A stretch of 64,000 nucleotides of DNA from Oculina patagonica (taxonomy: Eukaryota), in the NCBI RefSeq assembly GCF_052425735.1, contig NC_135765.1:33852001-33916000 (forward strand), read 5' to 3'. This document shows positions 937 to 51,235 of this stretch, in pieces (the first letter of the stretch is position 1; every line of letters begins with the position of its first letter). A model generated the notes under the pieces. It did no database searches. It saw only the letters and a program-made list of their open reading frames with translations, and had not been told where the DNA came from. The position numbers and the translations under genes are program-made.

Positions 937-1813
937 GGAGGGTTACTCGGGATTTTCAAGTGACGGGTATGATCAGGAGCCCATCAACTGGAGCCTCCAT
1001 ACGTACTGTACCCTTGAGCCAACCCTTTCCCGCATATTTTTATTTTTAGAAACACATTTCCCGCGAAAACATTGCTCCTGTGGTCAGACCACATGCAGCG
1101 TAGCTAGGGCGACGTGACGATGTTTGGGCCCTTTTTTGACGAGTTTTTGGCTTTATTGTCAAAGGTGTAAATATAGAATCACTTAAAAGGGTGTGGAAAT
1201 TAATCAGTGCACCCTGGGGATTCGAATAAGCCATTTATAGCCATTTGGAAAAGTTGAAATGGTTTGCCGTCCTTGTTTGGGCCCTTTTTGATGGGTTTTT
1301 GGCTTTATTGTCAAAGGTGCATTGAATATACAATCACCTAAAAAGTGTTGGAAATTAATCAATGCTCCCTGGGGATTCGAATAAAACCATTTATAGCCAT
1401 TTGATAAAGTTGCAATGGTTTCCTGCAGGAGCCCATCCTGGTATGTTCGAAATGGGGCAAAAATCAAGACCCAAATCCCTAGGGCTATCAACAAAACCCC
1501 CAAAAATCCAAATATCAACCCCTTAAAAAATCCCATGCCGAATATTCTGACCCATTATTTTTTTCAGAAAGGGGAATGATCTGAAAATATAAATAACGCA
1601 ATGGAAAAAACATAAGATACACGTTCAGTCAATTTTACTTTATTCGTAGAACTTTGTGGCCAAGGCATTACCACGAATCTTTAAATTTAGATTGTTTTTA
1701 AATTAATCTCCCTAAAAATTACCCAAAAAAGCCACCCCAAAAATACTTGCCATTTTTTCCTATGCAAAAAATTTTCGATTATCCCCGTCACTTGAAATCC
1801 CGAGTACCACCCC
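937..1813. mobile_element. Poly-G/poly-C-ended MITE with a nested insertion (~975-1439)
   Basis: Ends ggttactcgggattttcaagtgacggg and ccccgtcacttgaaatcccgagtacc are inverted repeats. The internal block is flanked by ggtatgatc / ggtatgttc (TSD-like) and contains ~165-bp tandem units. Confidence 0.6.
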
Positions 1814-1993
1814 ACCGTAGGGTGGAATTTAGACACAAAGTTGATGCAGTTATAAAGCTCCACTCGGCTACAACAAGCATCTCCAATGTATGGTAGGTTA
1901 ATTACTGTGTGGTGGTTGCACTGTGTGCATGTGGTGGTTCACCGGTGGTGGGTGCACTGTGTAGTGGTTACGGTCTGGTGGGTAATGTTCCAA

Positions 1994-3163
1994 CACAGGC
2001 AGACCACCCTATGTGTTCGTAGTTAATTATTGTTGTTGACATGAGACGAACAAAAGAAATTTTGAAATCGATAAGGGCTACTGAAATAAAGCTTTAGAAA
2101 TAAAATATCTAAACTACATTTCGCTCTAAATATCTCAATAAAGTTTAATGAAATGTTTATCGACTCATGTGTCGTATTTTTTCGCCTGCGCGGGCCGTTT
2201 TAAGCGCTTTTTTTAACTGATTTAGCCGGCCGAAGGCCGGTAGAGAAGAAAGAGGAGACAAGGCTTGCAAGTCGGCGGCCGACAGAAGCGACCTCCTCCA
2301 CTTCAAACCGGAATTAACGCCAAACTAATGAAAAACTCACCTATCTGACGACGGCTGTCGATCGGTGAGTTGTTGCTCTATCTCTTCGCCAAATTTTAGC
2401 TTCATCCCTCCAACATTTTCCGAGAAAATCCATGCTGAAATCGTGCAAACGGCTTTCTGACTATGATCGGTGCTCGACATAGCGACCAGGGAAATTCCAA
2501 ACAGGCCGGCCGTTTCAAATTAACCAATCAGCGCTTGGTTGAAGTTCAGCGGAAGTGTCAAAACTCCTGTGCGGGGCAGGGTTGGGGTTTTGAACCGCGG
2601 CCGGCTGCCGCGGGAAGCCAAGCGCTGATTGGTTAATTTGAAACGGCCGGCCTGTTTGGAATTTCCCTGGTCGCTATGTCGAGCACCGATCATAGTCAGA
2701 AAGCCGTTTGCACGATTTCAGCATGGATTTTCTCGGAAAATGTTGGAGGGATGAAGCTAAAATTCGGCGAAGAGATAGAGCAACAACTCACCGATCGACA
2801 GCCGTCGTCAGATAGGTGAGTTTTTCATTAGTTTGGCGTTAATTCCGGTTTGAAGTGGAGGAGGTCGCTTCTGTCGGCCGCCGACTTGCAAGCCTTGTCT
2901 CCTCTTTCTTCTCTTACCGGCCTTCGGCCGGCTAAATCAGTTAAAAAAAGCGCTTAAAACGGCCCGCGCAGGCGAAAAAATACGACACATGAGTCGATAA
3001 ACATTTCATTAAACTTTATTGAGATATTTAGAGCGAAATGTAGTTTAGATATTTTATTTCTAAAGCTTTATTTCAGTAGCCCTTATCGATTTCAAAATTT
3101 CTTTTGTTCGTCTCATGTCAACAACAATAATTAACTACGAACACATAGGGTGGTCTGCCTGTG
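1994..3163. mobile_element. Foldback/MITE element with ~545-bp near-perfect terminal inverted repeats
   Basis: 1994-2538 is the reverse complement of 2618-3163, with only one substitution and one 1-bp indel seen. Spacer is 79 bp. Termini are CACAGGCAGACC...GGTCTGCCTGTG. No clear TSD. Confidence 0.9.
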
Positions 3164-3215
3164 CCCCAACCCGAAATCGATTAGCCCCCAGTAAAAGCAG
3201 GCTCTGGGTCAGGAA

Positions 3216-3645
3216 CCCAGGGGGGGGGGGGGGGGGGGTACTTGACCTAAATTAAGGTATAGGGGTGCTGCTGGAGGTTTGAAGTTTAGGACTATAAAAA
3301 CTTAAAATACCTTCCCTGTGTAGGACAACTCCCGCTATTTTAAGACTCTATTTAGGACAAAAGACAGCATCAACAATCATTTACGTAAAATGCGAAAACA
3401 CCGATCCCACCAAATAAAATAATGCTTTTTATTGAAGCGAAAGCGAAAACAATGTAAATACATGGACGACAGTCTTGCATCCATACCCTGTCTAGGACAG
3501 CTTCAGACCCAGCTGTTTAGGACAGAGGAGCTTGAAATTATATACCCTATTAAGGACCGGAGGAGTCAAAAACCATACCCTATCCAGCAGCACATCCCCG
3601 TATAGGCCATATAGGGGAGTCCCCCCCCCCCCCCCGCCCCCAGGG
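3216..3645. mobile_element. Poly-G/poly-C-ended non-autonomous element
   Basis: cccaggggg...ggtact at the left end and gagtcccc...ccaggg at the right end. Direct repeat gggtcaggaa at 3206-3215 and 3643-3652. Confidence 0.65.
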
Positions 3646-6860: not shown

Positions 6861-8519
6861 TAAAAAAGTTAACTTAATGAGAAATTTAACAGTTTTTAGT
6901 AAGGCACCCGAATATCTGTTTTTATTTTCTTACTGGAGACTGTATTATAATTATAAATAAAGATAAATAGCTATGAATGCTTGTAAATAATGTAGTGTTA
7001 TTTTTTTAAAAAAAAATGTGCCTTTGCACAAAAAGTTTCTAAAATAATCGGGATAGATTTTTGGTATATGTTAGTGAGTTGCTATAGCTGATACAAAGTT
7101 AATGTTGTACTAACAGTAACTAATAAATTAAAAAAAAATGATTGTGTTGAAGCTTTCAAACTTTATTCCCTCTTCCCCTCTTCAAACTAATTTGACTGTC
7201 TGATTACCAATACCAATATTTTTAATGCGCTGACTTTGAACGCTTAATATAACTTTTTCAAGATTAAACCAAACACTGCCAAACTTTGCGAGTTTATCTA
7301 AAATTTAACTGGGAATAATTTGGTGGGATAGGTTGTTTTGTCGAAAACTTGAAGTTACCATTGCATGACAACAGCATTTTGACATTTTTATACAACGTTT
7401 TATTGTTTTCAGTGAGTACTTTTCAGTAATTTTGCACCGTTTTCTAACAAAAGATTGCAGATCCAAAATGCCAGCTGTTTTGACAGCATGATGTAATTGT
7501 CCATTGTGTCGTACATCAAAAGATAGATTTTGGACATACTAATTATATCCTCTAAGTTTCATTGTCATTTGTGACTGCTTAAATATTCTGGAGGTTATGG
7601 AGTGGGGGTAGAAATTTCCCCCCTCCCCCCCCCCAGATTTCAGATTTTTAGATTCAGATTCAGATTTTTTATTATTTACAACAATTAAACAATATTACAC
7701 ACTATTTACAGAAAGCCCGATCTGAATAGGGTTAACTCACCCTGCTATTCTAAACTGTGGGGGTTAAGTTGCTACATCCATATTGTACTTGAGATTATGT
7801 ACACTATAGTTTATATAGGAGTAAATAAACTATGTAGAGCCATTTGTTACAGTTGTACTGTATTATTTTGAACTTTGAATTGACAGTAGTATATCTACAG
7901 AGTAGGTCTAAAGATGTGATTTAGGTAACTCAACATTTATGAGGGAATTTTCCTAATGTAATTGTTTGTATTCATAAACATTTTAAAAACTTGTATGACT
8001 TTTGTAAGTTAAAAATGTGTGCATCACAGTAAGAAGGTAAACCGTACTTTAGGGACCCCTCTAAAAACACTGTTGTCACAGACAAAGTAAAATTTTTTTT
8101 TTATAACATGTCTACATTGCAGCACAGGTAATTATCTCATCTGAAATATCTTTTGAAAAATCTTGATCTTTACACCTCTAATGTGGAATTGCGTGCCCAA
8201 AGACACAAAAATTAGCCATTGTTACGGACTGTATCAATTTCTTGACTTGGAAAAATATGCCAACCAAGTTAATTTGAAACCCCCATCATCTTAAACTGTT
8301 TTTCATTTTGATTGAGACTTCAAGATAGCACAGTCAGACTATACATAATGTTTAATGGTCTCACTCACTAAATGAGTACAATCATATATAACGATTGTGC
8401 ACTATTTGTTTTTTACAAATAATTTAATCACTCAGTTTATAGAATGGATTCCAGGTATCATGAAAGCAATTTTAATTTTAATTCTTCTTAATTATTGTTT
8501 TAACAATAATTAAGAAGAA

Positions 8520-11500
8520 TTAAGAATCACTCGAGTCACTTGAATTGCGATCATCTATTTCATCTTCTTCTACTTGAGGCATTCTTTTACTTGATGTTGG
8601 TGGTGTAATTTTATTGTAGTGTTGCCAGGTGCTTTTTTGGAATGCCATGATACAATGAAGATTTCCACCTGTCTTTTTCACATTTTTCTGTTGAATTCCT
8701 TTGTGAAGTTGACGAATGTTAAGGTACAAAGGGGCCTCGTTGTTTAAATCTGTTTCAATGTCTGTCCACCTAAAAGAAAAAAGTTTTACAGTTAACTGCA
8801 GTAGTTGATTACAGTGTACTGTTAAAACCATCAAGCCAAGTGGTCCATAGTCCTCTAAACCTTATCCTGATTTCTGTAACACTATAGTGACCAGGAGTAT
8901 TTCTATTCCCCCTGAATTGGATGCTGGTTCATCACAGGGTTACCCTCCCTGCATTAGTTTGCTGGTACCCATTTATACGCCTGGGTGGAGTGAGGCAATC
9001 TGTGAGAGTCTGAAGTTAAGAACACTAACCACTTGGCCTCTGCATCTCTTGATGGACAAACAAGAGGACAAACTAACAAGGAAAGTAGAAATTGGTACAG
9101 TTTTTTTACCTTTTACAGTGAATGCTTGGGTATTTACAACTTGGGTCTCCAATCAGAATCCAAGTTTCAACCTCATCTTCATATAACTGCACCCTATGAT
9201 AACATGCAAATGGTCAGTTGTGTTACATTATTCAGAAATACCAACGGTAAGAGCCTGCTCTTGAGTAGTTAGTGGCTCGTACAATTTCCATGGCATGAAC
9301 ATCTGAAGTCTATGCTAGTGTACTGCAAGTTTATCCACAAGACAAGTATTTGTAAGGGTCCCAAATGGGGGGGGGGGGGGGGACAGGGGGTCCAGGAGCC
9401 CTAAGCTTTTTGCTGTGCAGAGCCTGGAGCCTTGAGAATGTTAGTTTAAAGACACATTTGTTTGTAGATACGAGTTTTTTGTCTTTCCAGACTGTTAGCC
9501 TGAGTTACTCCATGCTTTATACTGGACAAGTCCAGTAAGAAACAACATCAATGAGCCGTCAGGCATAAACAATTAACCTCTAACATTGAAGAAACCAAGT
9601 TAAACAGTAAGTCAGAAATTATAATTATTGTCTTAACCTGTATGCATCAACAGCCTTGACAGGTGAGTCATCATAACCAATAGGACAAAAGTAGTGATTG
9701 TAGCAGTGGTAGATGAAAGCCATCTGGGGATTATGCAGACCCTTCTTTAACTGACGTAAAGCTTCCTCACCACTCAGGCCAATAGTACGACTCTTTCCTT
9801 TGGGTTTGTACAAAAAGTATGCCTCACCATGAACTCCAAAATACTCACAGAGCTGCCTGAACCATCTAAAATAGAATTTCAATGTTGATTACTGGAAAAA
9901 TTGTTTACCAACCCTCCAAGTTTATTTTTTCCTTAGTGGCCACTGACTGCTCAATTTGGTCACCAATGAAAAATTTTAGTCGCTAAATATAGCTCACACT
10001 TTCAATCCTTCTTCTCAATTTTAGTCGCCAGGCTGGCGACTTCGAGGCAAATTTAGTCGCCAGCTCCAAAATTTTAGTCGCCATAGTGACTAAAAAAATG
10101 GTCTTAACTTGGAGGTGTGTTAACATTACTTACACAACAGATAGTTTTACTGACCTTTTTCTTTTTCTGCTCTTTCTTTTTCTTTATTATTTAGTAGCAT
10201 TAATTATAATTATTAGCTAACATTATGGGAATGTAATGTCTGCAGATTTGGTATTAATAGCAACAAAGCATTTTGCATGCATTGTATGCCTGTGGAAATG
10301 AAAATGATTTTGTCTTACCTCATTAAAGTGGCATTTCCAGTGAATGGTCCAAACCTTATTTCTGCAAATGGCGGTTTAAAACCCAGTATGCTTAATGCTT
10401 CCTCTTGAGTCAGGGGTTGCTTACTATAATACAACAAAAGGACTCTCAGTTTAGTTACTAGTCAGATACTGACAATAATTTTAGTTTTTATGATTAAAAA
10501 AATTGTACAGTCAGTTAGTATGTTAGAACAGGTACCGGTATTCTGTATGATACTGTGGGAAATCATTACTTTAACAATAATTCATGTTATTAATAATTAT
10601 GTTCTTTTGTTTAAAATTATGGCAACATTAAACTATAATAGCACTGTAATGTACAACAGAAACCCATGGCGTAGTAGACAAAGTCTTTGATCAGTCACTG
10701 ACATTTTTTTTTTTTTTTTTTTTGGGGGGGGGGGGGGGTTAAGGGTTGAGAATGACATGACTAATAAAGTCACATGACTTTGTCTGATCAACAGTAAGAT
10801 ATCACAATATTTGGTACATTAGTAACATTAGTCATGTCATTCTAACTAATTTGGAACTACAGTTCTCAAACTCATTAAAAATTCATCCAGTTAAAACAAA
10901 GAAAATCAGAACCGTGATGGAGGTTTGGAAATCTGTTCTCTGAAGAGTTTGTTTCTATTGAGAAGATACATCCAACACTTGAGGAAGTGTTTTTCTTTGT
11001 TCTACTACACTGTACCTGCCTGCACCAAGGGAGCTAAACAGGAAATTCCAGCAGGATACCAGAGAGGAGATTCCACAAGAATGCTTGTATTGAGGCCGGC
11101 TCATACAGTACCTGACATAAAGTATTAACAAGTAATTAATTAATCATAATTTAATATTAATCAAAAGCAAATAACAAACTGTTCAAAGGACGAGTATCTC
11201 GCACTGACAGGTTGTCAAAAAAGATTTTTCTTTGAGGGGGAGGGGGGAGAGGAGGCTCTGAACTTCCTGCTTCCCACTCCTTCCTTAGTGGACCCCCCTT
11301 GTAATGCTATTTCTGTTGCAAAATATTATGCAATGTTGCAATTTTTTCCCAGCTTCTTCCAGTTCATGCTTCCTAGGGAATCCCCCTTCCCCTCCTCTCC
11401 CACCTCCCACAGAGTTCCCATCCCCTTTTATTCCCAGGTTCTATCCCCCTGTCACACCCCACAGTTTTAGCCTAGCTGTGGATTTGAACACAGGGTTGTC

Positions 11501-13255
11501 AAAAAAAGGCGGCAACCGGCACATTTCACCAGCTGTTCTGAATACTGCGCCAGCTACTCCTAATGCTAGTAGGTCAGTTCTGAGCATGATATTGGAGAAA
11601 GCTAACTAGTGTAAAAACCTCAAATCCATTTTGCTCCCGAGGGCTTCGCGCCCTGGACCCACAACAGGGGCGCTGCCCCTGTACCTTGCTGGAGCTCACT
11701 GGGTCCCCAGACCCACTGCATGATGGGGGGCCTCTTGCCCCCGGTGCCATCTACTATCAAAATATCTCCGGCTACTTTAAATCATTTTGACAAGGCTGTG
11801 AACACGACCAAACCAATTATCCAGTCTTTCTCCACTTATCTCTGGTCTCCCCCGTCCCCCTCTGGATGGGATGCCAGTCCATGACAGGTTACCTCTGGTA
11901 ACATTTTGACAGGCTGTCCTGATCATCACTATGCTAACCAGTACATGAATCTGGGTGGAAAGAGACTCCATGAGAGTAAAGTACCCTGTCCAAATACACA
12001 AAACAGTGTGTCTGGCCAGGTTTTGAACCCTGAGACTGACCCTGGCCAGACACACTGAACACACTAATCATAAAGCCACCATGCATCCTATTATTGCAGT
12101 TTTTTAGTGAAATGCGAACTCTGAAATTCAAAAACTATCCAACTAACGATTGCATTTTTCACTGCCTTCAATCATAGTATTATGGCGACAGCCAACAAAC
12201 CATGAAAAACAGAAAGGAACAAAATGGATCGAAATCTACCAATCACAACTGACAGAGGTGACCTTTTGACCCGGCTGAAGTGAAGTTCTGTTTCCTGAGA
12301 GGTCTGCTAAGATGATTGACGGCAGCAAAAAGCATAAACCATTGGTTGAGGATTGAATTTCAGAGTTCGCATACCACTGAAAACCGCAATTAACTACTAT
12401 TTTAAATTAGTGGCAGATCTATCTGATGTTACAAAGTACTATTTACCATCTTCTGAGGTCTAGGACTTTCCTTCCGGCCATCATTTCTTGAGTGACAGTT
12501 TCCATGGATGTCAAAGAACTTCCCTTGTACAGATCTTGCTTATTTGAGGCTGCAGTTCGATGTTTAGTGTCATCGTTATCATCCTGAAAGTCATGCTCTT
12601 TGTCTCTAAGATACTTTTTTGGTGGTTTCTTCCTCTTTTTGGGTTTAAAACAGTCTACATCAACTTGCCATGAACATGAACGAGGAATTTCAGGTTTTGC
12701 CTGATGTGAGAAATTTACTGATTCAAACATTTGTGGATCAGAGATACTTTTAACATGCTTTCCCCGAAACACTTTTTCCTCCGAGATCAGCGGCAGCGAA
12801 AAAGTGCTGCATTCCATAACTTGATCTTCTTCTCTAAGTAATGGGGGAACTTTCCATGAGGAATTTGTCAGCCACTTTTCACTTTTAAAATCTTTCTCTT
12901 TACATTCTTCGGTTGCTATGAAAGATACCCTTGATGTCCCGGCATTAAAATTGTTTATATTGCTGGTTATTTCATGGACAGCAGACTCTGGAATTTTCTG
13001 CTCCGGTTCACAGACTGTTGAGCTTTCTTCATAAGTAGCATTACATGTAATTTCGTACGACTCTTTTACACAGCTGTTTTTAGTGTCAAGGTCTTGAAGA
13101 ACCAAATCACCATTTGATGGCACGTTGTCCACAGCTTCAAAGAAAATCTCCTCACAGTCAGAGTCGCTATCGTCTTGAGTTAGTTCCCCTTTTTCTTCAT
13201 TCAACTGTGAGCTGTTGTGAATTTTTCCTCGCTCGGTGCTCCAAATCAACCCCAT
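8520..13255 (-). CDS. BIVM: Basic immunoglobulin-like variable motif-containing protein, copy A (6 exons, 523 aa)
   Basis: Exons 13255-12447, 11111-11016, 10423-10319, 9865-9638, 9193-9110, 8769-8520; all GT-AG and in phase. Motifs [25 protein letters not shown], TQEEALxILGFxPPF, GPFTGNxTLMRWF, HYFCPIG, WILIG and GGNLHCI match vertebrate BIVM. Confidence 0.93.
8830..9045 (-). mobile_element. tRNA-derived SINE (abundant family), intronic
   Basis: Family core gggtggagagaggcactgtgagagtaaagtgtcttgcccaagaacacaac, degenerate in this copy. Related copies at ~11860-12050, 23570-23770, 28785-28985, 49550-49810, 53235-53437, 57115-57440 and 59440-59700. Confidence 0.6.
9909..10117. mobile_element. MITE in BIVM intron 3, shared by both arms (also ~51680-51856)
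   Basis: Inverted ends caaccctccaagtt / aacttggaggtg. Internal ttagtcgcca repeats. Present at the matching position in both copies. Confidence 0.55.
11489..11800. mobile_element. MITE in BIVM-A intron 1, absent from BIVM-B
   Basis: cacagggttgtcaaaa ... ttttgacaaggctgtg. Empty site at ~49850-49870 (gatttgaaca on the minus strand). Confidence 0.7.
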
Positions 13256-13803
13256 TTTTGAGATCTTCCTCGAACGTCGTTCAACTTTCGGACCTTTCGA
13301 GTTCCACAGCTCTACATTTCATGTACTAGATGAGATGGGAAGCCATTACGATTTTGCAACTGAATAAAACTCGCATCAACTCAGCAAGAACTAACCTGCT
13401 AAAAACAGCAGGAGGCATGACAAGAATAAATTTTGGAAGTCGTTGCCAACTTTTTGGTGTTTTGAAATTTTCCTTGGTTTGGAAAGTAGCGCTAAAACGT
13501 GTTACCGCTGACCGATTGATGTGTTCTTGCTGAGGATTATGGGAAATTACAGGAACGCCTGGAACATAACTGTTCTGTTTATGCAAATTCGTTGTATTGT
13601 TTTGAGTTTTGATTAGATTTACGCACAACTTCCTTTTGAGCGATTATTCGCAGCTAGTTCACTGTCAAAGGTTCCGCTGTGATCGATCTCCAGGGCGCCA
13701 AAGGAAACCTTTCGAGAAAACATCTGCGTTTGCATAACTTGTTTCACTCTCTGTAGAAACAACTCTTCGAAAACCGAGAAAACTCTTTGAAAACCCGCTG
13801 AAA
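13256..13803. promoter_or_regulatory. Putative bidirectional promoter between BIVM and MORN4 (also 47778-48362)
   Basis: Divergent start codons lie 548 bp apart. The interval is CpG-richer than the flanks and conserved between arms. Confidence 0.55.
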
Positions 13804-14265
13804 ATGTCTTCCCCGAGCTCTCAAGCTGTTGCAAGACACAAATTTACTTACCCCATCGGCGACGTGTACGATGGAGAATGGAATAATGATGGAAGGAAAC
13901 AAGGGATCGGACATCTATCGCTTGTCGATGGAACGAAGTATGTTGGACAATTTCAGAACGGATTTTGCCACGGCCATGGTGTTGCAAGATTTCCGGACGG
14001 CTCTATGTATGAGGGTGAATTTGAAAACGGAAAATACAGTGGCTTCGGGGCTTTTACACGGAGCGATGGAATGCGCTTTGAAGGAAGGTTTCAAAATGGG
14101 AGAGTTGATGGCGAAGGCATGATTACCTTCCCTGATGGAACTCACGGTCGGCCAAGGCAAGAGGGCTATTTTATGGGGACAGAACTTGTCGAGAGATTCC
14201 GAGCAAACGACACAGTTATGAAAGCGCAACAGGCTGCTAAGATTGCTCGAAGTATCAAGATTTAA
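13804..14265 (+). CDS. MORN4: MORN repeat-containing protein 4, copy A (single exon, 153 aa)
   Basis: Four MORN repeats (YxGxWxxGxxxGxG) plus the MORN4-type FPDGTHGRPRQEGYF segment and C-terminal helix. Confidence 0.92.
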   Translation: MSSPSSQAVARHKFTYPIGDVYDGEWNNDGRKQGIGHLSLVDGTKYVGQFQNGFCHGHGVARFPDGSMYEGEFENGKYSGFGAFTRSDGMRFEGRFQNGRVDGEGMITFPDGTHGRPRQEGYFMGTELVERFRANDTVMKAQQAAKIARSIKI

Positions 14266-15853
14266 CAATGAATTATATCACAAATTTTAAGTTATGCAAC
14301 TTAGTTTTAGTAATTTCAAATTCCCACGAAACTGATCTCAATTAAGTATTGTGTAGTGGGAAAGTGGTTATAAATTTCCCCATATCGCTATTGCCGCAAT
14401 TACGGCGAATTATGATTTTCCCTATTCTGTTTTAGAAAATATTATGTACAGATATTGTAAGGGAAACTAAAACTGTTTAATAGTCTAGTTTGTTTCTTTT
14501 TGTTCTCAATGAAGGATCTAGAAATATATTATTATACCCACCCCCAAATTCAATGTTATGCAAATTAGTTTAACACCCACATGAAGCTGAAATTAGAGGT
14601 GAGCTGATTGATGCAAGATCTTCCTGTTAGTAATACGTGCTGACGCCATTGGTGGCAGCATGGGCAATGCTAATTCTTTGTTGTTGTTTTTTTCTTGTCC
14701 ATTTTTAAAAAGCACCATAACTTTTAACGATTGAAATAGCTGTGGTCATGTGGCAGGGCAGAGGCCTACAGAAAGACCACAGAACTGGTACTGAATGGCA
14801 TTTTATAGTACTACAAAGATGCCTCCACTTTGCAGGCTGATTTTCCCCTGCCCTCCCATCCCCATTTTCTTGAGATTGGATCCAGAAAATTTCATAGCTA
14901 TACACAACTTCGAGACCTTGGGAACAAGGTTGAGCTATACAGACACCAGAGAAGTGTCTCTGATGTGTTATTGCACAGTTTTAAAGTTTCACGCACAAGT
15001 AACAGCGACTCAGAGACAGCAGATTATCTCTGTGGGGCTATATCTGTAAAAAAGTTTTGGGTCAAATCTCAGATATCTTTTGTGTGGTTCCAAAAAACAT
15101 TGATATTTACCTCTCAGAAGGAAATTTCAAGGTGGTGTGGTGTGGCAAAGTGTGTAGCTAAACTGAAATTTGTGGAGGGGTAAGGGTAGGAGCTCAAACC
15201 AAAAAATCTTACATGGGGGAGGTATGGACATTTTGGAAAACAACGCATTAGACACTTCTTTGCTCAGACAAGCTACCAGTATATGCAGCACATGGGGTAC
15301 ATTTTCAACCTTTCATTAGTCACTGGCCTTTTTTCATTAGTGTCCCCCACTTGTGCTCTGGTTGATTGCTGTAGAGAACTCAGTATGTGAAATTTTTCTT
15401 TATAAGCTTATTAAATCCCTGCTCCAGGTGTTCTGTTAATTACTGGAGAGTAGTGATTAGTGGGAAGAACAACTTAATTATTTTCACACGCCATTCTTAG
15501 CACTGCTCACTTAATAACCAAATGCCTGTAAAAGGCTAGTAATAAGGTAAAGTGTGTCTCATGAACAATTTAGTGACAAGTCAAAGTCAGAACATTCTTT
15601 ATTAATTTATTAAAATTCTCATAGTTTGGAAAATTATTACAATAATAGTAATTTCTCCTCCAAGAATGACTAAATACTGTAGCTCTTTTGAGAGTTGAAT
15701 AGACCCTCAGAGTTGTTTTTATTTAAATTTTACTGTCAGCTAATTGCTTAATTCAATTTACAATATTTAGCAATGAATATTGGACTGAAACTTTTGAAGT
15801 ATTCAGGAATACATGACTTGACTATTTGACCTAATATGTTTATTATGACATTG

Positions 15854-18800
15854 TTATAAACCATAGGTGACGATCATATCCTTTATAGGCCCTCTGCAGT
15901 AGGAACACTTCACCAAGAAGGACGTACACTGATAACAAGTTATTTGATGGCGACAAGGAATTACAACACAATTTGGTTTTTCAATAGTACAAATTATGCA
16001 ATTATCCTTTCGAAACCACATTTCTTCAATCTCTTTAGTGGCTGATTTTAGAACATCAGCAACAGAGTTCTCTGCAGAGTCCTCTCTCTCCTTTGATGCC
16101 AAAACAATCTGAGTCAGCTTCTCAAACTTGCCAGCAAGCCGCTTCCGAAGAATTTCACTTCTGTCGTTTAAAAGGCCAACTTGACGAGAATGAGCTTTTT
16201 GTTTGTTCTTATGGTCCTCTACTACTGCAGCTAGCCTTTCCTGGTGGAAGATCTTGTCTCTTTTGAGATCAGTGATTGTGCTTGAAAGGTTAGCCATTTC
16301 ACTTTCAAACCTTTTCTTCCATGCTGCGCTGACTTCTTGCTCAATGTTAACAATCTTGACTTCTTGACTACCCAAGTCCTTTTCCAGTGAAGAAATCTTG
16401 GACTGAAGTTTCAAGAGCTCTTGTGCATGGCTTCTGTCTTTTTCAAGGAGTTTTTCACTCAGAAGATCTTTCTCTCTCTGAAAAAGTAGAAGTGGATACT
16501 GTTTGTTCTGAAATTGCTTCAGTTTAACATTTAATTCCAGTGGCAGATCTAGGGGAGGGGCCGGGGGGCAGCCCCCTTTTTCTTGAACAAATAGAGGCCA
16601 GAAGTGTCAAGAAAAGGTTTTTCGAGAGCGGGCCTCCCCCTTATCTAAAGGTCTGGTTCGCCACTGAATTCTATATACTGAAAGCTGGCTTATTTTGCAA
16701 TTGTTTACATCACATACTTGTTTTTTTGACTGAAGGCTTCAATTATTACCAGTCATTCATCAAAGTGAAACATAACTAATGTATTAACTAACTGCATTTT
16801 TACTAGCTAGGAGAATCATTAATTAAATACCATAAACAGGGCCATAGGCAGGATTTTGCATGGGTGGGTGTGAGTGCTGGAGGAGTAAGGATTTAGGGAG
16901 ATCTGGGGATATTCTTCCCTGGAAAATGTTGACAAATAACATTGTTGGTCCACATTTCCTGCATAATTCTGAGAGTCATTTTAACCCTCTTTCCCCACAA
17001 TAAGTTATTCTTAGAATACGTTTTTTCAGGGTTTTTTTTTTATCACTTTCCATGACACTTACTTGTAACATCTCCTCTCTCTGCTTGAGCACTGATGGAT
17101 TCAGGAGCATGTATGATGATTGCAGTTCCCCATGCAAGTCTTTGCAAAATGGCTGGTTCATCCGGCAAACCTGCATTGATAAAGATGCCACTAACTTGAC
17201 AATGCTGTCACTGTGGCCGCCAAGTGAGCTTGTTCCAACTGTAGAAAAGAAAAAAAAAAGCATTTTAAAATAACAGGAAGCTGAAATAACTTTGAACTTG
17301 TGGTAAAAATTATAAAAGGGTAAGGGGTTAGAGCTCGGGGCGGAGCCTCCCCGTACAAAACTTTTTTGAGTACCCCCCCGGGTAAAAATTATGTCTACAT
17401 TTACTTGAGAATGGTAATGGTGGGGTTGGAATGATTATTGTAAAAAAGAGTCCAAAACACCTATCAATTATATAACAAATGTCTCAATTTTAATTGGTTT
17501 TGCAAGTACATGTCTATTTGTCAAGCAGGGCCATAGGCATGGCAGGCATCATGGGTGCATCTGCACCCACACGGCCCACAAAGGTCTGCCTTATCATGCA
17601 GTGAGGGTTAAAATGATTCTCAGAATGCTGGAAATGTACATGATTTGATTATAAGCAAATGAAAAAAGTGCATCAACTAACCTTGTACTAACTGCTCAGA
17701 TTGAAGGTTCAGTATCATTGACACAATAAAAGCCTCTCTGCAGAAACACTTGGTGCTATTCTTTTGTTCACAACAGTGATCTGCTTTTCCACTCAACAAA
17801 GCTCGTGGAATCTCGTAATGACCAAACTCTTTTCGAAGAACAACCTGTCCTGCAGATTCAGAAATATCCATGGATACCATACTAAACTCTGGATAGCACA
17901 GCTGGACAAGCTTTTCGACATGCTGAAGAATATTAATTTCTCCTCGAGTCAAGTCTGCAAATGGAACTGTTACTGATTGTTTTGTCGTTGCTCTGGAGAG
18001 AATTGTATCCAAGGGATCAACCAATCCAGACCTGTACAACACGTCGATTAAAGATTGATTACACAAAACTAACTTCTGATCAATTTCCTGTTTGATTTTA
18101 CTTAGCTTCTCTGCCGAAATGCAGTTTGGTATTGGGTATGTCATCGATCCATGAACAGTGAAGAAATGTTGAGCAACAAGCTTAAGCAGTGCAGACTTAT
18201 CACTGATGTAAAAGTTGGCATGTCGCACATCTGAGGTGCAGTTTTCTTCCAAGAGTCTGTAATAGTGTGGAATCAGATCTGGTCTCTGCTCGATGGCGTG
18301 AACCCACATGCTACTGATCTGATGGTCAACGTCACTAAGATGAACGACAGCTCTTCGATCCCTGTCAATCTTGAGATAAACAAAGTCAACCCCAGAGGCT
18401 AGACCATCCTTGGACAAGTCTGACACCCAAACACCTTTGACAAAAAGTTGACCTTTATAACGTTCACCTAACAGCAACGTGCCCACCTGTGACTTGACAT
18501 AGTCAGAAGGCGGACAAAGAAAAAGAAACCGCCTCAGGTACATTTCCCAATCTTTATGATAAAGTGGAAAGACAGATACACGTGTGTCTGTCTGTCCAAG
18601 GTTGGCAACATCGTCATCATCATCATCATCATCATTTTCCTTCCACCTGTCATCGACAAACACAGTCAACACCTCCTCATCAAATGCCTCATCATGTGAC
18701 AATCCAAACCTCCAGCGATCTTTGCTCGTTTCCATGGAAACCACTCTACCTTCCCTGACTAAAGCTAGGGCGCCAACTTTAAGTCCTTCGCCAAACTGTC

Positions 18801-19266
18801 CAATCACTTCCTTGCTGGAGGCTTTCTTTGAAAAACCAAGAAGCAACACCTTCCTCATTAGCTCTGTGTCACGGTTTATCAGGGTAAGCTTTTCTTTGGC
18901 TGGGGAATAAACTATTCTTCCGAGTTCCAGTCTGTGACCATCTTGAGGAGAACCATCGAACGTTTGATGATCACGTTTTTGTGTTTGATTCGTCAAACCA
19001 TCAAAATTATTTTTTTCTTTCGTGTTCCTCTCGAAAGAAACGCGATTCTCGGCTTTTATCACTGCTCTGTACAACAGCAAGTCATTTTCTTTGCAGCAGA
19101 GGAAATCCACTTTCGATCCACCCTGCAATTTCTCCAGCGAAGAAAACACCCCATCATGCCAGTTTTGAACAAGTTCTCGGATTCCTTCCCACGTTTTCCA
19201 TGAGGGTGCATATTGAGATGTTAAACTAAGACTTATAGACTTCACTGCACTTGACTCCTTGGCCAT
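15854..19266 (-). CDS. GHKL (HATPase_c-like) ATPase - coiled coil - C3HC4 RING fusion, copy A (3 exons, 794 aa)
   Basis: Exons 19266-17682, 17238-17063, 16477-15854; GT-AG and in phase. N-box EGIRELVQNWHD, G2 box IGQFGEGLK, then LFVKGVWV...GVDF..LKIDRDR. C-terminal CIIC-x11-CRH-x3-CYQC-x6-CSYCR. Confidence 0.85.
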
Positions 19267-20016
19267 TTTCTCGCGTACTGTCGGTAACTTGCAATATCAC
19301 GTAGTACGTGATCTCAAAAGCCTGGGAACGAGCTGCAACGATGACATCATTGTTATTTTTTTCCGGAGGTATATAACAGTTGCAGCTCGTTGCAGCACGT
19401 TCCCAGTTTTGAGATCACGTACTACAGGTTCAAGGCCAAGGCAGAATTGTCGCAAAAACCTCCAGTAATAAATAATTAGTGATTCATGATCAACTGGAAT
19501 TTATAAATGCACGCGGCTTGAGACAATGGAGACAGATAATGAGGCAGCGATCCGATGTAGGGTGAAAAACAGCGCAATGTTTACCTGAGATAAGGCTTTG
19601 AATTAACTGCCTTAAAATGTTTCCATTATTTTGAAAATCGGACATTTCATTACATACTTATTCTTCTTTTTGACTGCCAAGTTTAAAAAAAATTCTATCG
19701 AGCGCTTTTTATTTTGCGATCATTTTAGTAAGCGAAGGCCCTTTTTCGATAAAAGAGCGAAATAACACTTCATACCAGTTGCAAAATAAACGTTAAGGCC
19801 AAAATGTTACTTGATCGCGCCTTATGAACGTTTTCTCAATAATGTTTTAAGACTGCTTTGTTTTTGTTGTATTTTAGCACCTGAAAACTTCATCCAAAAT
19901 TTTCTCGAAAACGTTCTCATAAAAATTCTTCAAATTTTGCAAACGTCAAGAAAACTTTGTCAAGTCCAAGATCCAGAAGACTTATTTCAAAATTATCCTT
20001 CTATTACAAGATAAAA

Positions 20017-21341
20017 AACCTCATGGTAATTCGATGAATGAAGTGCCGATCTCCGCTTTTTTTCTAAATAAGTGTCCATTCACTGTCCAATAAGTAAAGC
20101 AATCTCACTTTGCTTTAGTTTTCCACGTGAGTTGCGTCATTGATGGCTCGTGCTCTCTGGGGTCGTAGTCAGTGCTATTCAGTTTTCACAACCAAAATAT
20201 TTACCGGTTAGTGTATTACCTTTGATCCTTTTCAATCAATCAATCAATAAAATTTATTTACCCTCGGAGCTGACGGGGGCTGGCTAGGCCCCTAGCAAAA
20301 CATATGCTAATATGCCGAGAATATGCCGTTTTGTGAATATGTTTACTTTTCTGTCAGAAGCGTTATCTTTGAGCAGCGGATAAAATTTGGAACTTCGTGT
20401 ATCTGCTCCGGACTCAAAAAGATGAAAAACGGATGACGTGACACGAGGTGACGTGACACGAAACAGAAACGTGCCGTGGATGTGGTGTTAACTAAATGGC
20501 GAGCGTAATAATTTTTTATAACAGTTTAAGCGTAACTATATGTAGTTCATAGGTGCTATCAGTAATGTCACAATCTCACTTAATTTGCCTTTGAATGTTT
20601 TCTTGCGTGAATGGGTCATAGTTTTTTTCTTCAAATAAGCGTTTAATAATGTAACACAATCTCACTTTATTTCCTTGTAAATGTTTTATTTTTCCATGGG
20701 AATTACGTCATGATCTTCGTGCTCTCAGGCTTCGTAGCGCGAATTCTATTTCATCACAAAAACATTTAAGTGTAACCTTTGATCCTTTTTAGCATTAAGT
20801 AAATTTGTTTTGTGAATATGTTTACTTTTCTGTTAGTACGTATAGCGTTATTTTGAGCAGCGAATAAAATTTGAGAGAAAGATGCGCCTTTCTGCACGAC
20901 TCAAAAAGGCGAAGAACGGATGACGTGACACGAAGATGACATGACGCGAAACATAAACGTGCATAAATGTTGTCTTTACTAAAACACGTATTTGAATGTT
21001 TTCTTACGTGAATGGGTCATTGATAGCCTATGCTCTGAGGCTTCGTAGAGCGAATTCTATTCTCTTTTATCACCAGAGGATAAGTGTAACTGACCCATAT
21101 TCGATTTGTTTTGTGAAAATTCAATTCAGTTCCCTGAAAAAGAGCGACCCTGGGAACGAGGTTGGAGAATAATTTGTTTTGCCATGCGCTGAATGGCGTT
21201 TTAAAGAACCTTTCTGCCAGCACGTTCACCGTTAAATGCATGAATTAATTGCGGTTTAATATCAGAATGGAGTGAGTGAGTGAGGGAAATTAATAAACAC
21301 GTGACTTCGAGAATGATCACTACACCTTCATTACCATTCGG
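20017..21341. mobile_element. ~1.3-kb non-autonomous element with internal tandem subrepeats (Helentron/HINE-like is an inference)
   Basis: acctcatggtaattcg ... cattaccattcggt between A-runs. Reverse-complement copy at ~42823-44093. Internal repeated blocks (ttttgtgaatatgtttacttttctg, gatgacgtgacacga). Confidence 0.7.
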
Positions 21342-23190
21342 TAAAAATCGGTCTTGTGTAAAATGGGTGGTGACGTCATTATGTTGCTATGGTTACTCCG
21401 ATTTCGATGAAACTTATCTCATTCGAAACTTTCATCTTTCTTTAGTACAGCTGTACTGATCGATTTTCAGTCGGATTATGAACCGTGGCATACAATTTGC
21501 TTAAAGTGCTACTATGACCAAAATTTTTGTTTTTCTTTTCGTCTTTTTCTAAAGTCAATTTGTTCAATAAGTCTATATTTAACTAGCGCGCTAGAATTTA
21601 GAACGTTGCGAGCAATATAAGCCTTGAAATAGCTTGCCGAAAATCGTGGAAAACCCGTCCGCCATTACTCGGACGTCTAAAGTGAGCCAGCGACTGTACT
21701 GAAAAGCGGATTTACGCATGAGTTGGTCCGTGACGTCATATGCGCATCGTCGCTTCGAGCTTCGAGTGTTCTAAGAGAGAATATACTGAGAATTAACAGG
21801 GTTATAAAAGATATTTCTTCGACAAATTCTTCGTCTAGTTTGCCCGGTGGCGAAACCCAAGAGAGCCGCAACGAAGAGACATTGCAATTTAGCGGTATCG
21901 TTTCTTATAATGAGAATTTAAAGCCGTTTGACGTCGGTCTAAAGGGCAATGTTTGTATGCAATACTTCATTCGATCGATGAGGTTTTGGCGCTGCATGCC
22001 AACAACGAAGCTGCCGTCTTCTTGTCCAATCGAAGAAGCCTCGAAGAACGAAGAGGAACGGCGATTCATGGACTACGTTCGTTTGAATACATGGTATGAT
22101 GAGAACGACATTGAATAGTTAGGATAAAATGTCTGCAATGTTTGAATTAATAGAGAGCTCTGCATATATATTACATGTAGGTTGCTATTGCCGTTTGCGA
22201 AGGATTGAAATGATCTTTACTGTTGTTTTCATTCTTGTAATCTATCATACACGCCATGGGCATAAAATCTATCTCAGCTGTTTATTCCGAAAAAAGCTTT
22301 ATAAACATGAAATAATGTAAAATTTATACAGAAAAATTAAAGTCAACAAGATGGTGCAGGTGATCAATGGATTTAGTTCCTTGAGTTTTATACAGTTTTA
22401 CCTTCCTTGACTACATAACAATACAGGTAATAAACCTTTTTAAAACTAAGTGTTTTAATGGGTAATAACACTTCAGACATCCAGCTTCAGCCAGCATTCA
22501 GTATTCCTGTTTCTTAAAATAAGAAAACCATTTGAATGCTGTATAGAGTCCTTCACTCTATTTTACTGATTATGTTATGAAACTGTCCCACAAGTAGCAG
22601 CAAAACTGGGTAGGAGTAGTTTTTCTTATTTATTTCACCCATTTGTTTTCCTCTTGGCCCCGTGATTTTTTGATGATAAAAATAACTCAAACAATATATG
22701 CACAACATGGGAACAAGTAAAATAATATTAAGGGTATAAAGTTTTAAGTTCATAAACAGGAACACCTAGACCTCAAACAAACACTGGGACCTTGATCAAA
22801 CGTTTCCAGTTTTGAACCGGCATTTAAATGAAGCCTGCATTGAGTCGGGGTCTGGCATCTACTCAAGAAAATATTTTTTTTATGGTATCATATGCAATAT
22901 GACAGTGGCTCTTTCTAGAGAATATCACTGGCAGTACATTGTGCATCTGCAGTATGTGTATGTAATTGAGAGTTCAATTTTGGGACTAATCTTGTGTCAA
23001 CTTAACGTGACTGTAAACAAGCCAGCTCCGTATACCACCCTAAATAAATTGCTCCCTTGATGCAAAAAGGCAAAGTCTGCATGCAAGCCTGCTTGCCCAT
23101 CAGGACAAAGCATATCTTGGTTTAAGTAGGACATATATGTTATGACACTGGTCTGGGCTTGCGCACTGACCATTAGGTCACCGCACCTAA

Positions 23191-23391
23191 ATAGGGGTGT
23201 CGAATGGTTAATGCGTTTGCGAGACGGCGGGACTGATATCTTTTCTGCGAGCCCGAGACCTTTTTAGCCTTGTAAAAGAAATCGAGACTCCGAAAAGGCG
23301 TCAAAGAAAAATTCGAGACGGCGAGACCCCTGAAATTTGGCTAAAATTTTGGGAGACCCGCAGTTTTTGAAGGACCATTCACCACCCCTCT
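23191..23391. mobile_element. MITE nested in the Kolobok-like element; second copy at ~39953-40154
   Basis: aggggtgtcgaatgg ... ccattcaccacccct ends with internal cgagac repeats. The 39953 copy is absent from the matching arm-A position. Confidence 0.7.
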
Positions 23392-23939
23392 AAATCAAAA
23401 CAACTACCCCATTGCTATGCAACATTTTTATTTATGGTACAGGTTTGACTGTATTTGTTGTCGGCTTCGCAGTTCGTGTATACTTTTTAAATAAATACAT
23501 ATATAATGGTTGCAAGGGTCCTGTGTGACCTCAAAATTGCCCTCTTTTTACAAAAAGGCAAGGTCTGCATGCAAGTCTAGTTGCCCACCAAGCAACTAGA
23601 CTTGCATGCCCTCGTCACACCATCAATTTGCAAGTTCCCATTCTACACTTGGAGAGGAGGCACCATGAGAGTAGTCTTGCCCAAGAACACAGCACAATGA
23701 CACCAGTAAGAGTCCACACCTGAACCGCTTGATCCGGAGTCCGACAACTTACACTTAGGCCACCTCACCTCAATCAATACAACATTTTTATTTATGGTAC
23801 AGATTTGACTGTACTTGTGTTAGAAATTATGATGGATCAGCAGCTCAGGGGTTCACATGATTTATTGTTGGCTACTACATTCTCAACTTATGAACAAAAA
23901 GAGCATGCCAAAAATAAATATATTGCAAACTTAAAATAA

Positions 23940-37059: not shown

Positions 37060-38417
37060 TAAATTTCAAAATAAAATAAAGAAACTACTGCTTGATGTTT
37101 TAAAATGTGAACATGACTAGTTGAAGTCTGCCAACTGATAGAACATTTTTCTATATGTATTAGTAATTGCCTTCTAGCTTTGCGTGTGTGTGTTGTGCAT
37201 TAATTATATTCTTAGTTTACGTTTTCACTAGTTAATTAATCATTTGCTTTTTGACATATATTTTTTCTCATTTTCTTTCGTTTTCCAGTATACTAATTTA
37301 TAAGTTGTAAACCTTTTTTTTTTAGTTTAAACCCTGCTCCTGCATCGAATAGTTGTTCCTTGTAGTGGGGGACAAGCAGCAAATCATATTTATAAAAAGC
37401 AAATAAAGTTCAGTTCAGTTGAGCTTCTTTTTATTTCTTTTAGGCATTTGATCATTTTAATTGTTAGACAGTAAATGTAGTTGGTATATAACCATGGATA
37501 ACTCCGTATTACGGACGGATACTTAAACTGGTAAAAACGCCAAGCATGATATGTTCGCTTAGCTATATGAGATGTATGGGACGGCTGCTTCTACCTTGTA
37601 AAATCATGAACCCAAAGGTGCTATTATACCTGGGATTTAGGCGCTAAGTAAATTGGCTGCTTGAATCCACCATTTTGCCTGGCCGCATTAAACATCTTGA
37701 GCACTTTAGCGCTTTTTTTAATTACTGAATGAAGAACGTAACTGTATCAAGTGTTACCAATTGCACTGGTGCACGAACCTTTTGCCGTCTTTCTTTAAAT
37801 TCTATTAAATAAAACCGCTTCTTTCCCTCATATTAATTTCTAAATGCCACTTACACCTTCCTTTCTCATCGGTTTCACAAAAATCTTTAAACATCATCAT
37901 AAACCCCCCTCCCCCCACCCCCCGGTCCGAAAATAAAATTTGACCTTACGCTTTTGACCTCTGATGGCATTTCTAGCCTGTATGTTGCTTCAAAGAGATA
38001 TGTATCAAGTATGCCAAAAGACATTACAGTCACGTCAGAATAATTCTGTATATGGTCAAAATAACGTCAGATACAAGAACGTGCAGAGTTTTTGTCAGGT
38101 ATTTCGTATTAATATGTCATTGTTCACTTACGGGACGTGACAATGCAAATTGTGTTTCGTTATTTCCTCTTTCATATCTATTTTTAACTTTGACGTACCT
38201 CTATAAAAGTAGTAAGATGTAAAGAAGAAACGTATTGTCGATTAACAAAATGCTCTTTTATGCACTACGCGTGTTAAAAAAGTTTCGTAAAGATTTTCAA
38301 GTGGAGAAATATTCCGAAAGGAAAGGAAATTGAAAGTGGACGAAAGTGGACTAGGTTCCACAACAACAAAACCTTCCCCACCCTTCCCCACAAAGACACC
38401 CAGTCTTGCAAAACAAT

Positions 38418-39402
38418 ATGGCGGAAAATAAAATTGTCGACGATTTTGAAGTTCTTCGCGTCACAGCGCTGGAAGACAACGATTATTCGCGATGGATGGA
38501 AAACCTACCGAATGAGAAACAACTGTGTCCTTTGAAAGATTTAGTGATTCCTGGATCGCATGATTCCGGAACATTTTTCCTCGATCAGAACATGGAGATC
38601 GGCCCAGATGAGTCAGCAACAATTCAAACTCTTGGAAGTATTTTTGGCAAAATAGCGAAGTCTGTCATCCACAGTTGGTCTGTGACACAGTCTATGACCA
38701 TTTATGAACAGCTTTTGTCTGGAATACGCTACCTAGATCTGCGAGTTGCATTCAGAGCTGAAGACAAAGAGTTGAGAATTTTGCACGGTCTGTACGGATG
38801 GACAATAGAGCAGGTTTTGGCAGAAGTGAACCGATTTGTGGCGAACTACCCGAAAGAAATTGTCATTCTGGACTTCAATCACTTTTACAACATGGATCCA
38901 GCTGCCCATGAAACACTCGCGGATACTTTGCTTGCTTCGTTTAGCGAGATTTTTCGCGCCCCAGGCGAGGACGGCCCGAATGTCACCCTTCCAAGAAATG
39001 TGGGGCAATGAAGAAAAGGTCATCATTATTTACCATGATTATGGCGTGGTTGATGCCTATCCTTGCTTCTGGCCGCCTCATTTAATCTGCTCGCCATGGC
39101 CGAACACAGCAGACAAGAAACTGTTGATGGAGTTTCTTAACAAACAAACTGCAGCGTCAAGTTTTTCAGATGATGCCTTTCAAGTGACACAAGCTGTTCT
39201 CACACCTCAAACATCAACTGTGGTACAAAACATGACCAGCACTCTAAAAGATGTGTGTGCGATGAAATGTAACTGCCATATTACCGGTTGGCTTAAAGCT
39301 CTCTGTGGAACCAAGTGTCACAAGTTTAATATAATCATAGCTGACTTTGTAGAGTTTGGAGATTTTATTCCTACTGTCATAAGCTTTAATTATTTTTTCT
39401 AA
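38418..39402 (+). CDS. PLCXD: PI-PLC X domain-containing protein (PLCXD2/3-like), intronless, with a +1 frameshift at 38991-38992
   Basis: IPGSHDSGT, WSVTQ, QLLSGIRYLDLRV, HGLYG, EIVILDFNHFY, then SPWPNT, VTQAVLTP and NIIIADFV in the next frame. Removing one C gives VTLQEMWG and a 327-aa ORF. Confidence 0.85.
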
Positions 39403-47315: not shown

Positions 47316-47777
47316 TTAAATCTTGATGCTTCGAGCAATCTTAGCAGCCTGTTGCGCTTTCATAACTGTGTCGTTTGCTCGGAATCTCTCGACAAGTTCT
47401 GTCCCCATAAAATAGCCCTCTTGCCTTGGCCGACCATGAGTTCCATCAGGGAAGGTAATCATGCCTTCGCCATCAACTCTTCCGTTTTGAAACCTTCCTT
47501 CAAAGCGCATTCCATCGCTCCGTGTAAAAGCCCCGAAGCCACTGTATTTTCCGTTTTCAAATTCACCCTCATACATAGAGCCGTCCGGAAATCTTGCAAC
47601 ACCATGGCCGTGGCAAAATCCGTTCTGAAATTGTCCAACATACTTCGTTCCATCGACAAGCGATAGATGTCCGATCCCTTGCTTCCTTCCATCATTATTC
47701 CATTCTCCATCGTACACGTCGCCGATGGGGTAAGTGAATTTGTGTCTTGCAACAGCTTGAGAGCTCGGGGAAGACAT
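47316..47777 (-). CDS. MORN4: MORN repeat-containing protein 4, copy B
   Basis: Protein identical to copy A; about 6 synonymous differences by hand count. ATG at 47777-47775. Confidence 0.92.
   Translation of the reverse strand: MSSPSSQAVARHKFTYPIGDVYDGEWNNDGRKQGIGHLSLVDGTKYVGQFQNGFCHGHGVARFPDGSMYEGEFENGKYSGFGAFTRSDGMRFEGRFQNGRVDGEGMITFPDGTHGRPRQEGYFMGTELVERFRANDTVMKAQQAAKIARSIKI

Positions 47778-51201: not shown

Positions 51202-51235
<34 letters not shown>

Follow-up and report, generated by a model that had tools for sequence, protein, structure and literature searches.

A duplicated three-exon gene in Oculina patagonica

In a window of 64,000 nucleotides from the coral Oculina patagonica (the whole stretch that was analysed; NCBI RefSeq assembly GCF_052425735.1, contig NC_135765.1, positions 33,852,001 to 33,916,000 of the forward strand), we identified two copies of a gene whose product joins an ATPase-like module to a coiled coil and a C-terminal RING. 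Copy A occupies 15854-19266 on the minus strand and consists of three exons with a spliced product of 794 amino acids (aa); copy B, at 40737-45698 on the plus strand, is also intact and encodes 798 aa. A preliminary description of the window, made from the sequence alone, had claimed two intact copies and an in-frame splice from the ATPase exon to a coiled coil and an IAP-type RING. Both claims hold, as the frames are open in both copies, all splice sites are of the GT..AG type, transcript joints connect the exons of copy A, and the RING is matched by the Pfam model zf-C3HC4_3. The exons are as follows.

17682-19266, minus strand: copy A exon 1, codons 1-528 and the first base of codon 529 (open reading frame; transcript joint at 17682)
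17063-17238, minus strand: copy A exon 2, linker, residues 529-587 (joints on both sides in three runs; the frame closes)
15854-16477, minus strand: copy A exon 3, coiled coil to about residue 740, C3HC4 RING at residues 747-787, stop codon
40737-42333, plus strand: copy B exon 1 (open reading frame; donor GTTAGT; 93% identical to copy A; its words occur in runs of 10 studies)
44199-44374, plus strand: copy B exon 2 (acceptor TTTCCACAG; donor GTAAGT)
45075-45698, plus strand: copy B exon 3, coiled coil and RING (acceptor TTCTTTCAG; frame intact, product of 798 aa)

Before splicing, copy A presents two open reading frames (ORFs) on the minus strand, one of 529 aa at 17677-19266 and one of 186 aa with the RING at 15854-16414. 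Its donors are GTTAGT and GTAAGT and both of its acceptors end in CAG; the splice signals of copy B are the same. The spliced protein of copy A is 100% identical to a deposited 794-aa model, 'hypothetical protein ACROYT_G029795'. The gene model is thus already predicted in the deposited annotation, and what is new here is the reading of the domains of the protein and of their ancestry.

Splicing was examined in public sequencing runs, with contigs of three runs from three studies placed on 15700-19400. The joints 17238|17682 and 16477|17063, exactly the two junctions proposed beforehand, were present in contigs of each of the three runs: in every run one contig omits 17239-17681 and another omits 16478-17062, with CT..AC ends that correspond to GT..AG on the minus strand. 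These contigs match copy A with about 99% identity (one piece of 1450 nt has 14 differences); the first exons of copies A and B differ in 59 columns. The introns of copy A are covered too, at lower depth, in the joint-bearing runs, and therefore unspliced RNA or DNA is also contained in them. Words specific for exon 1 of copy B were found with shares of 0.43-0.82 in runs of many studies, and five runs from several studies (X3, X6, X15, X16, and X19) contain 31-mers of both copies, with shares of 0.44-0.66. This suggests that both copies occur in single colonies and that copy B is probably transcribed as well.

Within intron 1 of copy A, positions 17312-17435 showed a summed contig depth of 1187-3522 in all three runs, against roughly 10-100 nearby, and many contigs leave the locus at 17311 and at 17377-17382 into unrelated sequence. 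This segment is a high-copy dispersed repeat, possibly a transcribed one.

At the protein level the copies share 748 of 794 residues (94%). Their synonymous divergence (dS) is 0.072, and the ratio of nonsynonymous to synonymous divergence (dN/dS) is 0.37 overall, 0.42 in the ATPase module and 0.28 in the remainder; the overall value indicates purifying selection on both copies after their divergence. No further copy was found when the 529-Mb assembly was searched in full in all six frames. Taken together, this is a real, expressed, and duplicated coral gene.

An ATPase module of the GHL type with an atypical G1 box

The first exon encodes three successive parts: a GHL ATPase fold (residues ~9-310), a helical and alpha-beta middle (~310-425), and a part that we read as a zincin-like pseudo-protease (~426-528). 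Profile searches of the ATPase exon with Pfam gave a single sub-threshold match, to HATPase_c_3 (PF13589, E 0.21, 12 bits versus a cut-off of 25), and searches with the NCBIfam and PADLOC models gave no match for the coral protein itself. The assignment of the fold comes from structure prediction. An AlphaFold2 model of the ATPase-bearing part, built on an alignment of 48 sequences, reached a predicted local distance difference test score (pLDDT) of 86 and a predicted template modelling score (pTM) of 0.77. When this model was compared with the PDB using Foldseek, the best matches were Hsp90/TRAP1/GRP94 and MORC2/3 (E about 1e-6, probability 1.0); against the Swiss-Prot part of AFDB the best match was MPN_633, an uncharacterised Mycoplasma protein (E 2e-11), with HtpG next. 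According to these models, residues 1 to ~310 adopt the GHKL/GHL (Bergerat) ATPase fold.

The motifs quoted in the preliminary description are all present, including DTRVSV at residues 227-232. Those with a likely place in the nucleotide site or at its edge are listed here.

19158-19179, minus strand: N box (motif I, ExxxNxxD), RELVQNWHD at residues 30-38, intact
18861-18884, minus strand: atypical G1 box (motif II), LINRDTEL at residues 129-136, assigned from alignment columns
18780-18806, minus strand: G2 box (motif III, GxxGxG), IGQFGEGLK at residues 155-163, all three glycines invariant
18352-18369, minus strand: IDRDRR at residues 300-305, a family signature directly past the ATPase fold and within the predicted dimer interface

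Conservation was scored over the 48 sequences, which range from corals to phages. N35, D38, G156, G159, G161, D301, and R304 are invariant in this set, and E31, N131, R302, and D303 are conserved in at least 90% of it. By its position in the N box, E31 is a candidate for the general base and N35 for the Mg ligand. In Hsp90 and Tiamat, the arginine that contacts the gamma-phosphate is supplied by an extension of the ATPase domain, and DRDR would be a candidate source of such an arginine in the coral family.

In GHKL proteins, motif II usually reads DxGxG, with the aspartate binding adenine. This canonical motif is absent here. N131 stands at the position of the adenine-binding aspartate, and the coral box reads NRDTEL versus NEGxxL in phage members. 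The G1 box had been described as degenerate, rightly so, and the alignment separates two components of this. The asparagine is found throughout the family, phage members included, and is therefore a family trait and not coral decay; the glycine of the phage-type box is replaced by aspartate in the coral and is variable among eukaryotes.

These deviations could also be taken to mean that in eukaryotes the GHL fold has lost ATP binding and is retained solely for dimerisation or for holding a client, as a pseudo-ATPase scaffold for a constitutively active RING ligase. The degenerate coral box, the variable glycine in eukaryotic members together with asparagine in place of the canonical aspartate, and the failure of the Pfam HATPase models on the coral protein all fit such a scaffold. 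On the other side, E31, N35, D38, and the three G2 glycines are retained from phages to amphioxus, the ATPase module is under purifying selection, and the asparagine is shared with the phage members. We therefore consider a scaffold of this kind unlikely, although it deserves to be kept in mind, and favor a module that would still bind ATP.

A predicted closed dimer

When residues 1-440 were modelled as a homodimer with ATP and Mg, the score was 0.75, compared with 0.01 for the best of three controls; among proteins of known structure, 21 of 30 solved as same-chain pairs and none of 23 solved as single chains reached the mark used for this score. Contact agreement between the model runs was at least 81%, with pLDDT of at least 81. 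In the predicted interface, the N-terminal strand (residues 11-20) lies on the ATP lid of the partner (138-146 and 158-163), with additional contacts from the 301-311 region (301-303 and 305-311). The predicted dimer would thus represent the classic closed state of GHL proteins.

A putative zincin-like part, coiled coil, and RING

The last ~100 residues of the large exon probably form a zincin-like domain, which the preliminary description had missed. A separate model of residues 300-528 had a pLDDT of 90, and we compared it with 48,161 PDB representatives using the VIA structure search. For residues ~426-528 the highest rows were the HtpX domain (Z 5.5), the zincin-like protease acel_2062 (Z 5.4), and a Grifola zinc peptidase, with Ste24, minigluzincins, and Wss1 (Z 3.8) among the further top rows, almost all of which are zincins. 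The phage-type relatives of ~440 aa end in LxHExxHxxGxD. The protease motif HExxH is present in 25 of 26 phage-type versus 0 of 26 eukaryote-type sequences, including the coral protein, where unnamed metagenomic rows were assigned to one or the other type by length, RING, and HExxH and not by taxonomy. The position of the phage motif is taken in the coral by the following feature.

17734-17781, minus strand: His/Cys cluster, residues 496-511, DHCCE...KCFCRE, aligned to the phage HExxH site

In the eukaryotic sequences the first histidine is retained and is followed by a Cys-rich pattern, H-x(3-8)-C-x(n)-CxC[RC][EQ]. In addition, one structural relative of the module in AFDB is named as a WLM (Wss1-like) domain protein. 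On the basis of the consistently zincin VIA rows, the alignment to the phage HExxH, and this WLM-named relative, we read residues ~426-528 as a zincin-like domain, probably catalytically dead in eukaryotes. A structural metal site of His and Cys residues may have taken the place of the lost protease site.

Downstream of the large exon, residues 585-740 are free of proline and carry a heptad signal that was matched by only 1 of 300 shuffled sequences, in agreement with a long coiled coil. The RING at residues 747-787 ends 7 residues short of the C-terminus and is matched by zf-C3HC4_3 with E 4.4e-10 (39.7 bits versus a cut-off of 27). Its zinc-ligand pattern is complete: C747, C750, C762, H764, C768, C771, C778, and C781.

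The inverted duplication

The two copies lie in an inverted (palindromic) segmental duplication of roughly 19 kb, with arms at 8503-27471 and 38993-54010 that are 82-95% identical in blocks and a spacer that contains runs of N at 28078-28577 and 35841-35976. This arrangement raises the question of whether the second copy is an assembly artefact, in which two haplotypes of a single locus were joined as an inverted repeat and only one gene exists. The position of the copies on the arms of a palindrome, the two N runs in its spacer, and the proximity of the locus to the end of a 34.3-Mb contig would all be expected of such an artefact, and 10 of 28 variant sites in other samples show the base of copy B. 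Against it, the arms are 83-95% identical with a dS of 0.07, the introns differ structurally, as a 1.2-kb piece lies in intron 1 of copy B and upstream of the gene in copy A, and the five runs with 31-mers of both copies come from several studies. An artefact is in our judgment improbable, and we continue to treat the locus as two genes.

The 1.2-kb piece in question is found at 20017-21284 upstream of copy A and at 42874-44094 inside intron 1 of copy B, where it explains most of the extra length of that intron; it represents either a rearrangement or a mobile insertion after the duplication. Several other ORFs were duplicated together with the gene.

13804-14265 and 47316-47828: MORN-repeat ORF
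12443-13255 and 48333-49175: acidic ORF of 270-280 aa
27062-27493 and 38836-39402: second of two PI-PLC-X gene ORFs

A PI-PLC-X ORF at 38406-39011 (E 5.3e-6) lies just outside the duplicated block that starts at 38993. The spacer contains two single-exon ORFs, one at 36167-36685 with a C-type lectin domain (E 1.7e-20) and one at 30103-30780 with a PAN/apple domain (E 1.1e-5).

Relatives in phages and eukaryotes

A word-indexed search returned 218 relatives of the protein, and an exhaustive HMMER search returned 2124 cluster representatives at E <=1e-3. The RING-ended architecture was found in animals, namely in sponges (Corticium, Oopsacas), molluscs (Haliotis, scallops, Lottia), hemichordates (Ptychodera, Glandiceps), and amphioxus, as well as in protists (the amoeba Balamuthia, the haptophyte Chrysochromulina, and the stramenopile Florenciella). 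Outside eukaryotes, residues 121-381 of the coral exon match the PHROG family phrog_6077 with E 3.1e-35, and relatives of ~440 aa occur in 114 phage records, some of them labelled 'histidine kinase-like ATPase'. The phage-type genes have small unannotated neighbors of the sort usual in phage genomes. In the ESM Atlas, the nearest clusters are 59-75% viral and are annotated with Pfam PF25856 (MPN635_N); PF25856 is recorded for the phage-type relatives and these Atlas clusters, not for the coral protein itself. Together with the Foldseek results, this bears out the earlier suggestion of a GHKL-fold ATPase from an uncharacterised, phage-rich family, and the fungal relatives suggested at the same time are present in the AFDB and Atlas clusters.

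In a maximum likelihood tree of 26 eukaryote-type and 26 phage-type modules, the two types are separated by a single branch with a Shimodaira-Hasegawa-like approximate likelihood ratio test (SH-aLRT) value of 100. On the eukaryotic side, sponges group with cnidarians, amphioxus groups with hemichordates beside the molluscs, and the protists fall together. This order resembles the species tree and fits vertical descent with many losses, not transfer into corals. The relationship to phages is real, and it does not reflect a recent transfer. We conclude that this is an old eukaryotic family in which, judging by sequence, the RING fusion is common to one clade that roughly tracks the species tree. 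As the tree carries no root, it gives the split between the two types but no direction for an ancient virus-eukaryote exchange.

The preliminary description had called the module 'horizontally acquired or patchily retained', and it is the second half of this alternative that agrees with the data. A recent transfer, in which the coral lineage would have received an ATPase gene from a phage or bacterium and joined it to a RING exon of its own, has in its favor the phage origin of the nearest non-eukaryotic relatives and the single intronless exon of the ATPase part. It is nevertheless extremely improbable: the same fusion exists in Balamuthia, a haptophyte, and a stramenopile as well as in sponges, molluscs, hemichordates, and amphioxus; the single-branch split and the animal branches behave as described; identity between the coral protein and the ~440-aa phage-type proteins is no more than 28-31%; and HExxH is gone in all 26 eukaryotic rows.

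Further fusions were seen in the AFDB fold clusters, where the same ATPase module is predicted in fungal proteins of 600-1260 aa and also in a protist U-box protein, the WLM-domain protein, and one protein named as a DNA cytosine methyltransferase. Since the C-terminal parts vary in these clusters, effector swapping applies to this family too, and the range of effector fusions, as yet unstudied, may be broader still.

Among the phage-like contigs, one that carries the phage-type member P0088 (contig L002, 10135-11027) has genes downstream of the ATPase with weak matches to Response_reg (receiver domain) and DnaJ, and a second contig, L003, shows the same gene order.

Two further leads were followed. 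The label of one phage record pointed to kinship with T4 rIIA, which was rejected, as only phrog_6077 and phrog_8203 match at E <=1e-3. A Balamuthia match named 'RING finger protein B' led to Dictyostelium rngB, which was not among the 30 Swiss-Prot structure matches listed, and no paper with the term was found. Literature searches for MPN635/PF25856 and for GHKL combined with RING found no functional study of, and no paper on, the family.

Comparison with known systems

The closest counterparts are the phage and bacterial 'histidine kinase-like ATPases' of ~440 aa (phrog_6077, PF25856, the Mycoplasma MPN_633/635 type), with which the whole module of residues 1-528 aligns: the N box, the NxG-type G1, GxxGxG, DRDR, the helical middle, and the C-terminal zincin-like part. 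The coral protein differs from them in that they retain HExxH, have neither coiled coil nor RING, and occupy phage neighborhoods that resemble those of early genes.

Among named ATPases, sequence comparison places sacsin and Tiamat nearest, with all matches below curated cut-offs. The NCBIfam model NF047352 (sacsin N-terminal ATP-binding) matches 26 of the 48 family members, with a best E of 9e-9 and up to 32 bits versus a cut-off of 50, and gives no match for the coral protein itself; for comparison, HATPase_c and HATPase_c_3 are each matched by 3 of the 48. The models of TmtA (Tiamat) weakly match two phage-type members, P0086 and P0088, over ~65 residues at E 7.8e-5 or weaker. The statement in the preliminary description that the module does not fit sacsin is contradicted by these sub-threshold matches, and the same statement made for HSP90 and MORC does not agree with the best solved fold matches.

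Tiamat, NO VEIN, and sacsin combine a GHL ATPase, helical repeats, an inactive Wss1-like metalloprotease fold, and swappable effectors, according to an October 2026 preprint (bioRxiv 10.64898/2026.09.30.754977); a RING effector is not listed there, and the word 'RING' occurs 0 times. The coral protein shows the same succession from GHL ATPase through helical parts and a putatively dead Wss1-like metalloprotease fold to a swappable effector. Unlike Tiamat, however, it gave no Pfam match to a DUF3684/TPR array, Fold B, or a PD-(D/E)xK nuclease, and unlike sacsin it gave none to a J or HEPN domain and ends in a coiled coil and RING. Its module is ~530 aa long versus ~1500 in the Sacsin/Tiamat/NO VEIN branch. 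The coral family thus follows the plan of Tiamat, NO VEIN, and sacsin in miniature and is not a member of that group.

Hsp90/HtpG and MORC resemble the coral protein in fold and in the predicted placement of the N-terminal strand over the lid of the partner. At the sequence level, a family profile run against PDB sequences gave only marginal matches to MORC4 (E 0.074) and HtpG (E 0.23), and the coral protein lacks the S5-fold middle domain and the CW and MEEVD elements and has asparagine for aspartate in motif II. With the RING E3 ubiquitin ligases of the IAP/MDM2 class it shares a C3HC4 RING at the extreme C-terminus (747-787 of 794); unlike the IAPs, it has no BIR or other IAP domains, and a coiled coil of ~150 residues and the GHL module precede the RING. 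The likeness to RNF213 is limited to the idea of an NTPase and an E3 in one polypeptide, as RNF213 is built of AAA+ modules in about 5200 aa and shows no sequence or fold relation to the coral protein.

A proposed ATP-gated ubiquitin ligase

GHL ATPases act as clamps that are closed by nucleotide; Hsp90, MutL, MORC, topoisomerases, and sacsin belong to them, and a 2026 preprint has added Tiamat. To our knowledge, no characterised GHL ATPase has a ubiquitin ligase of its own. We hypothesize that the coral protein belongs to a family that combines a GHL ATPase, a zincin-like domain without HExxH, a coiled coil, and an IAP-type RING, and that works as an ATP-gated dimeric clamp presenting a client to the RING; we assign this reading a probability of about 0.6.

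In such a mechanism, the protein would be a constitutive dimer through its coiled coil and RING. On binding ATP, its N-terminal ATPase domains would close on each other as a clamp, so that the N-terminal strand of a subunit reaches across its partner's ATP lid. A client, probably a protein, would be held either in the groove left by the protease or in the lumen of the clamp, and the RING would recruit an E2 enzyme and ubiquitinate the client or the ligase itself. The phage-type effector, proteolysis, would then have been replaced in eukaryotes by tagging with ubiquitin.

Several points weigh against this proposal. ATPase and E3 activity are assigned in every member from sequence and models, and ATP binding in particular is not assured by a G1 box in which asparagine replaces aspartate and, in the coral, the glycine is missing. 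The predicted dimer may echo GHL dimers of known structure, and calibration of the tool relied mostly on microbes and included no ligands. The zincin assignment relies on Z values of at most 5.5, a range that the tool itself calls common, and Foldseek found no match in the PDB for the C-terminal domain of the big exon. With respect to expression, the three joint-bearing runs are only guessed to be RNA; as the spliced form is not derivable from genomic DNA, the joints are informative all the same. The sole certain RNA run placed, X23 (raw reads, PolyA, SINGLE library), gave only 7 reads and thus neither strand nor expression level.

The client could be foreign, which would point to immunity, or a misfolded self protein, which would point to quality control as proposed for sacsin, and the sequence is compatible with either; a role in symbiosis may also be envisaged. 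A wider interpretation is possible, and we put it forward only tentatively, as its truth is rather doubtful: these proteins may be a new class of ATP-gated ubiquitin ligases derived from a GHL-ATPase-coupled metalloprotease of the kind that phages carry today. In early eukaryotes the protease would have been disabled and a RING, or in some protists a U-box, taken up as effector, and marine invertebrates up to amphioxus would have preserved the result as a sensor to clamp and tag foreign or damaged protein, a small equivalent of Tiamat, NO VEIN, and sacsin that is armed with a RING.

A clamp hard-wired to a RING, found from protists to amphioxus and with phage cousins whose protease motif is intact, opens the questions of whether ubiquitination can be gated directly by ATP-driven clamping, what role the GHL-protease plays in phages, and how the effector was swapped from a protease to a RING or U-box between the viral and eukaryotic versions. 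For coral biology, the gene would provide a candidate stress or immune E3 that vertebrate-centred annotation has left without a name.

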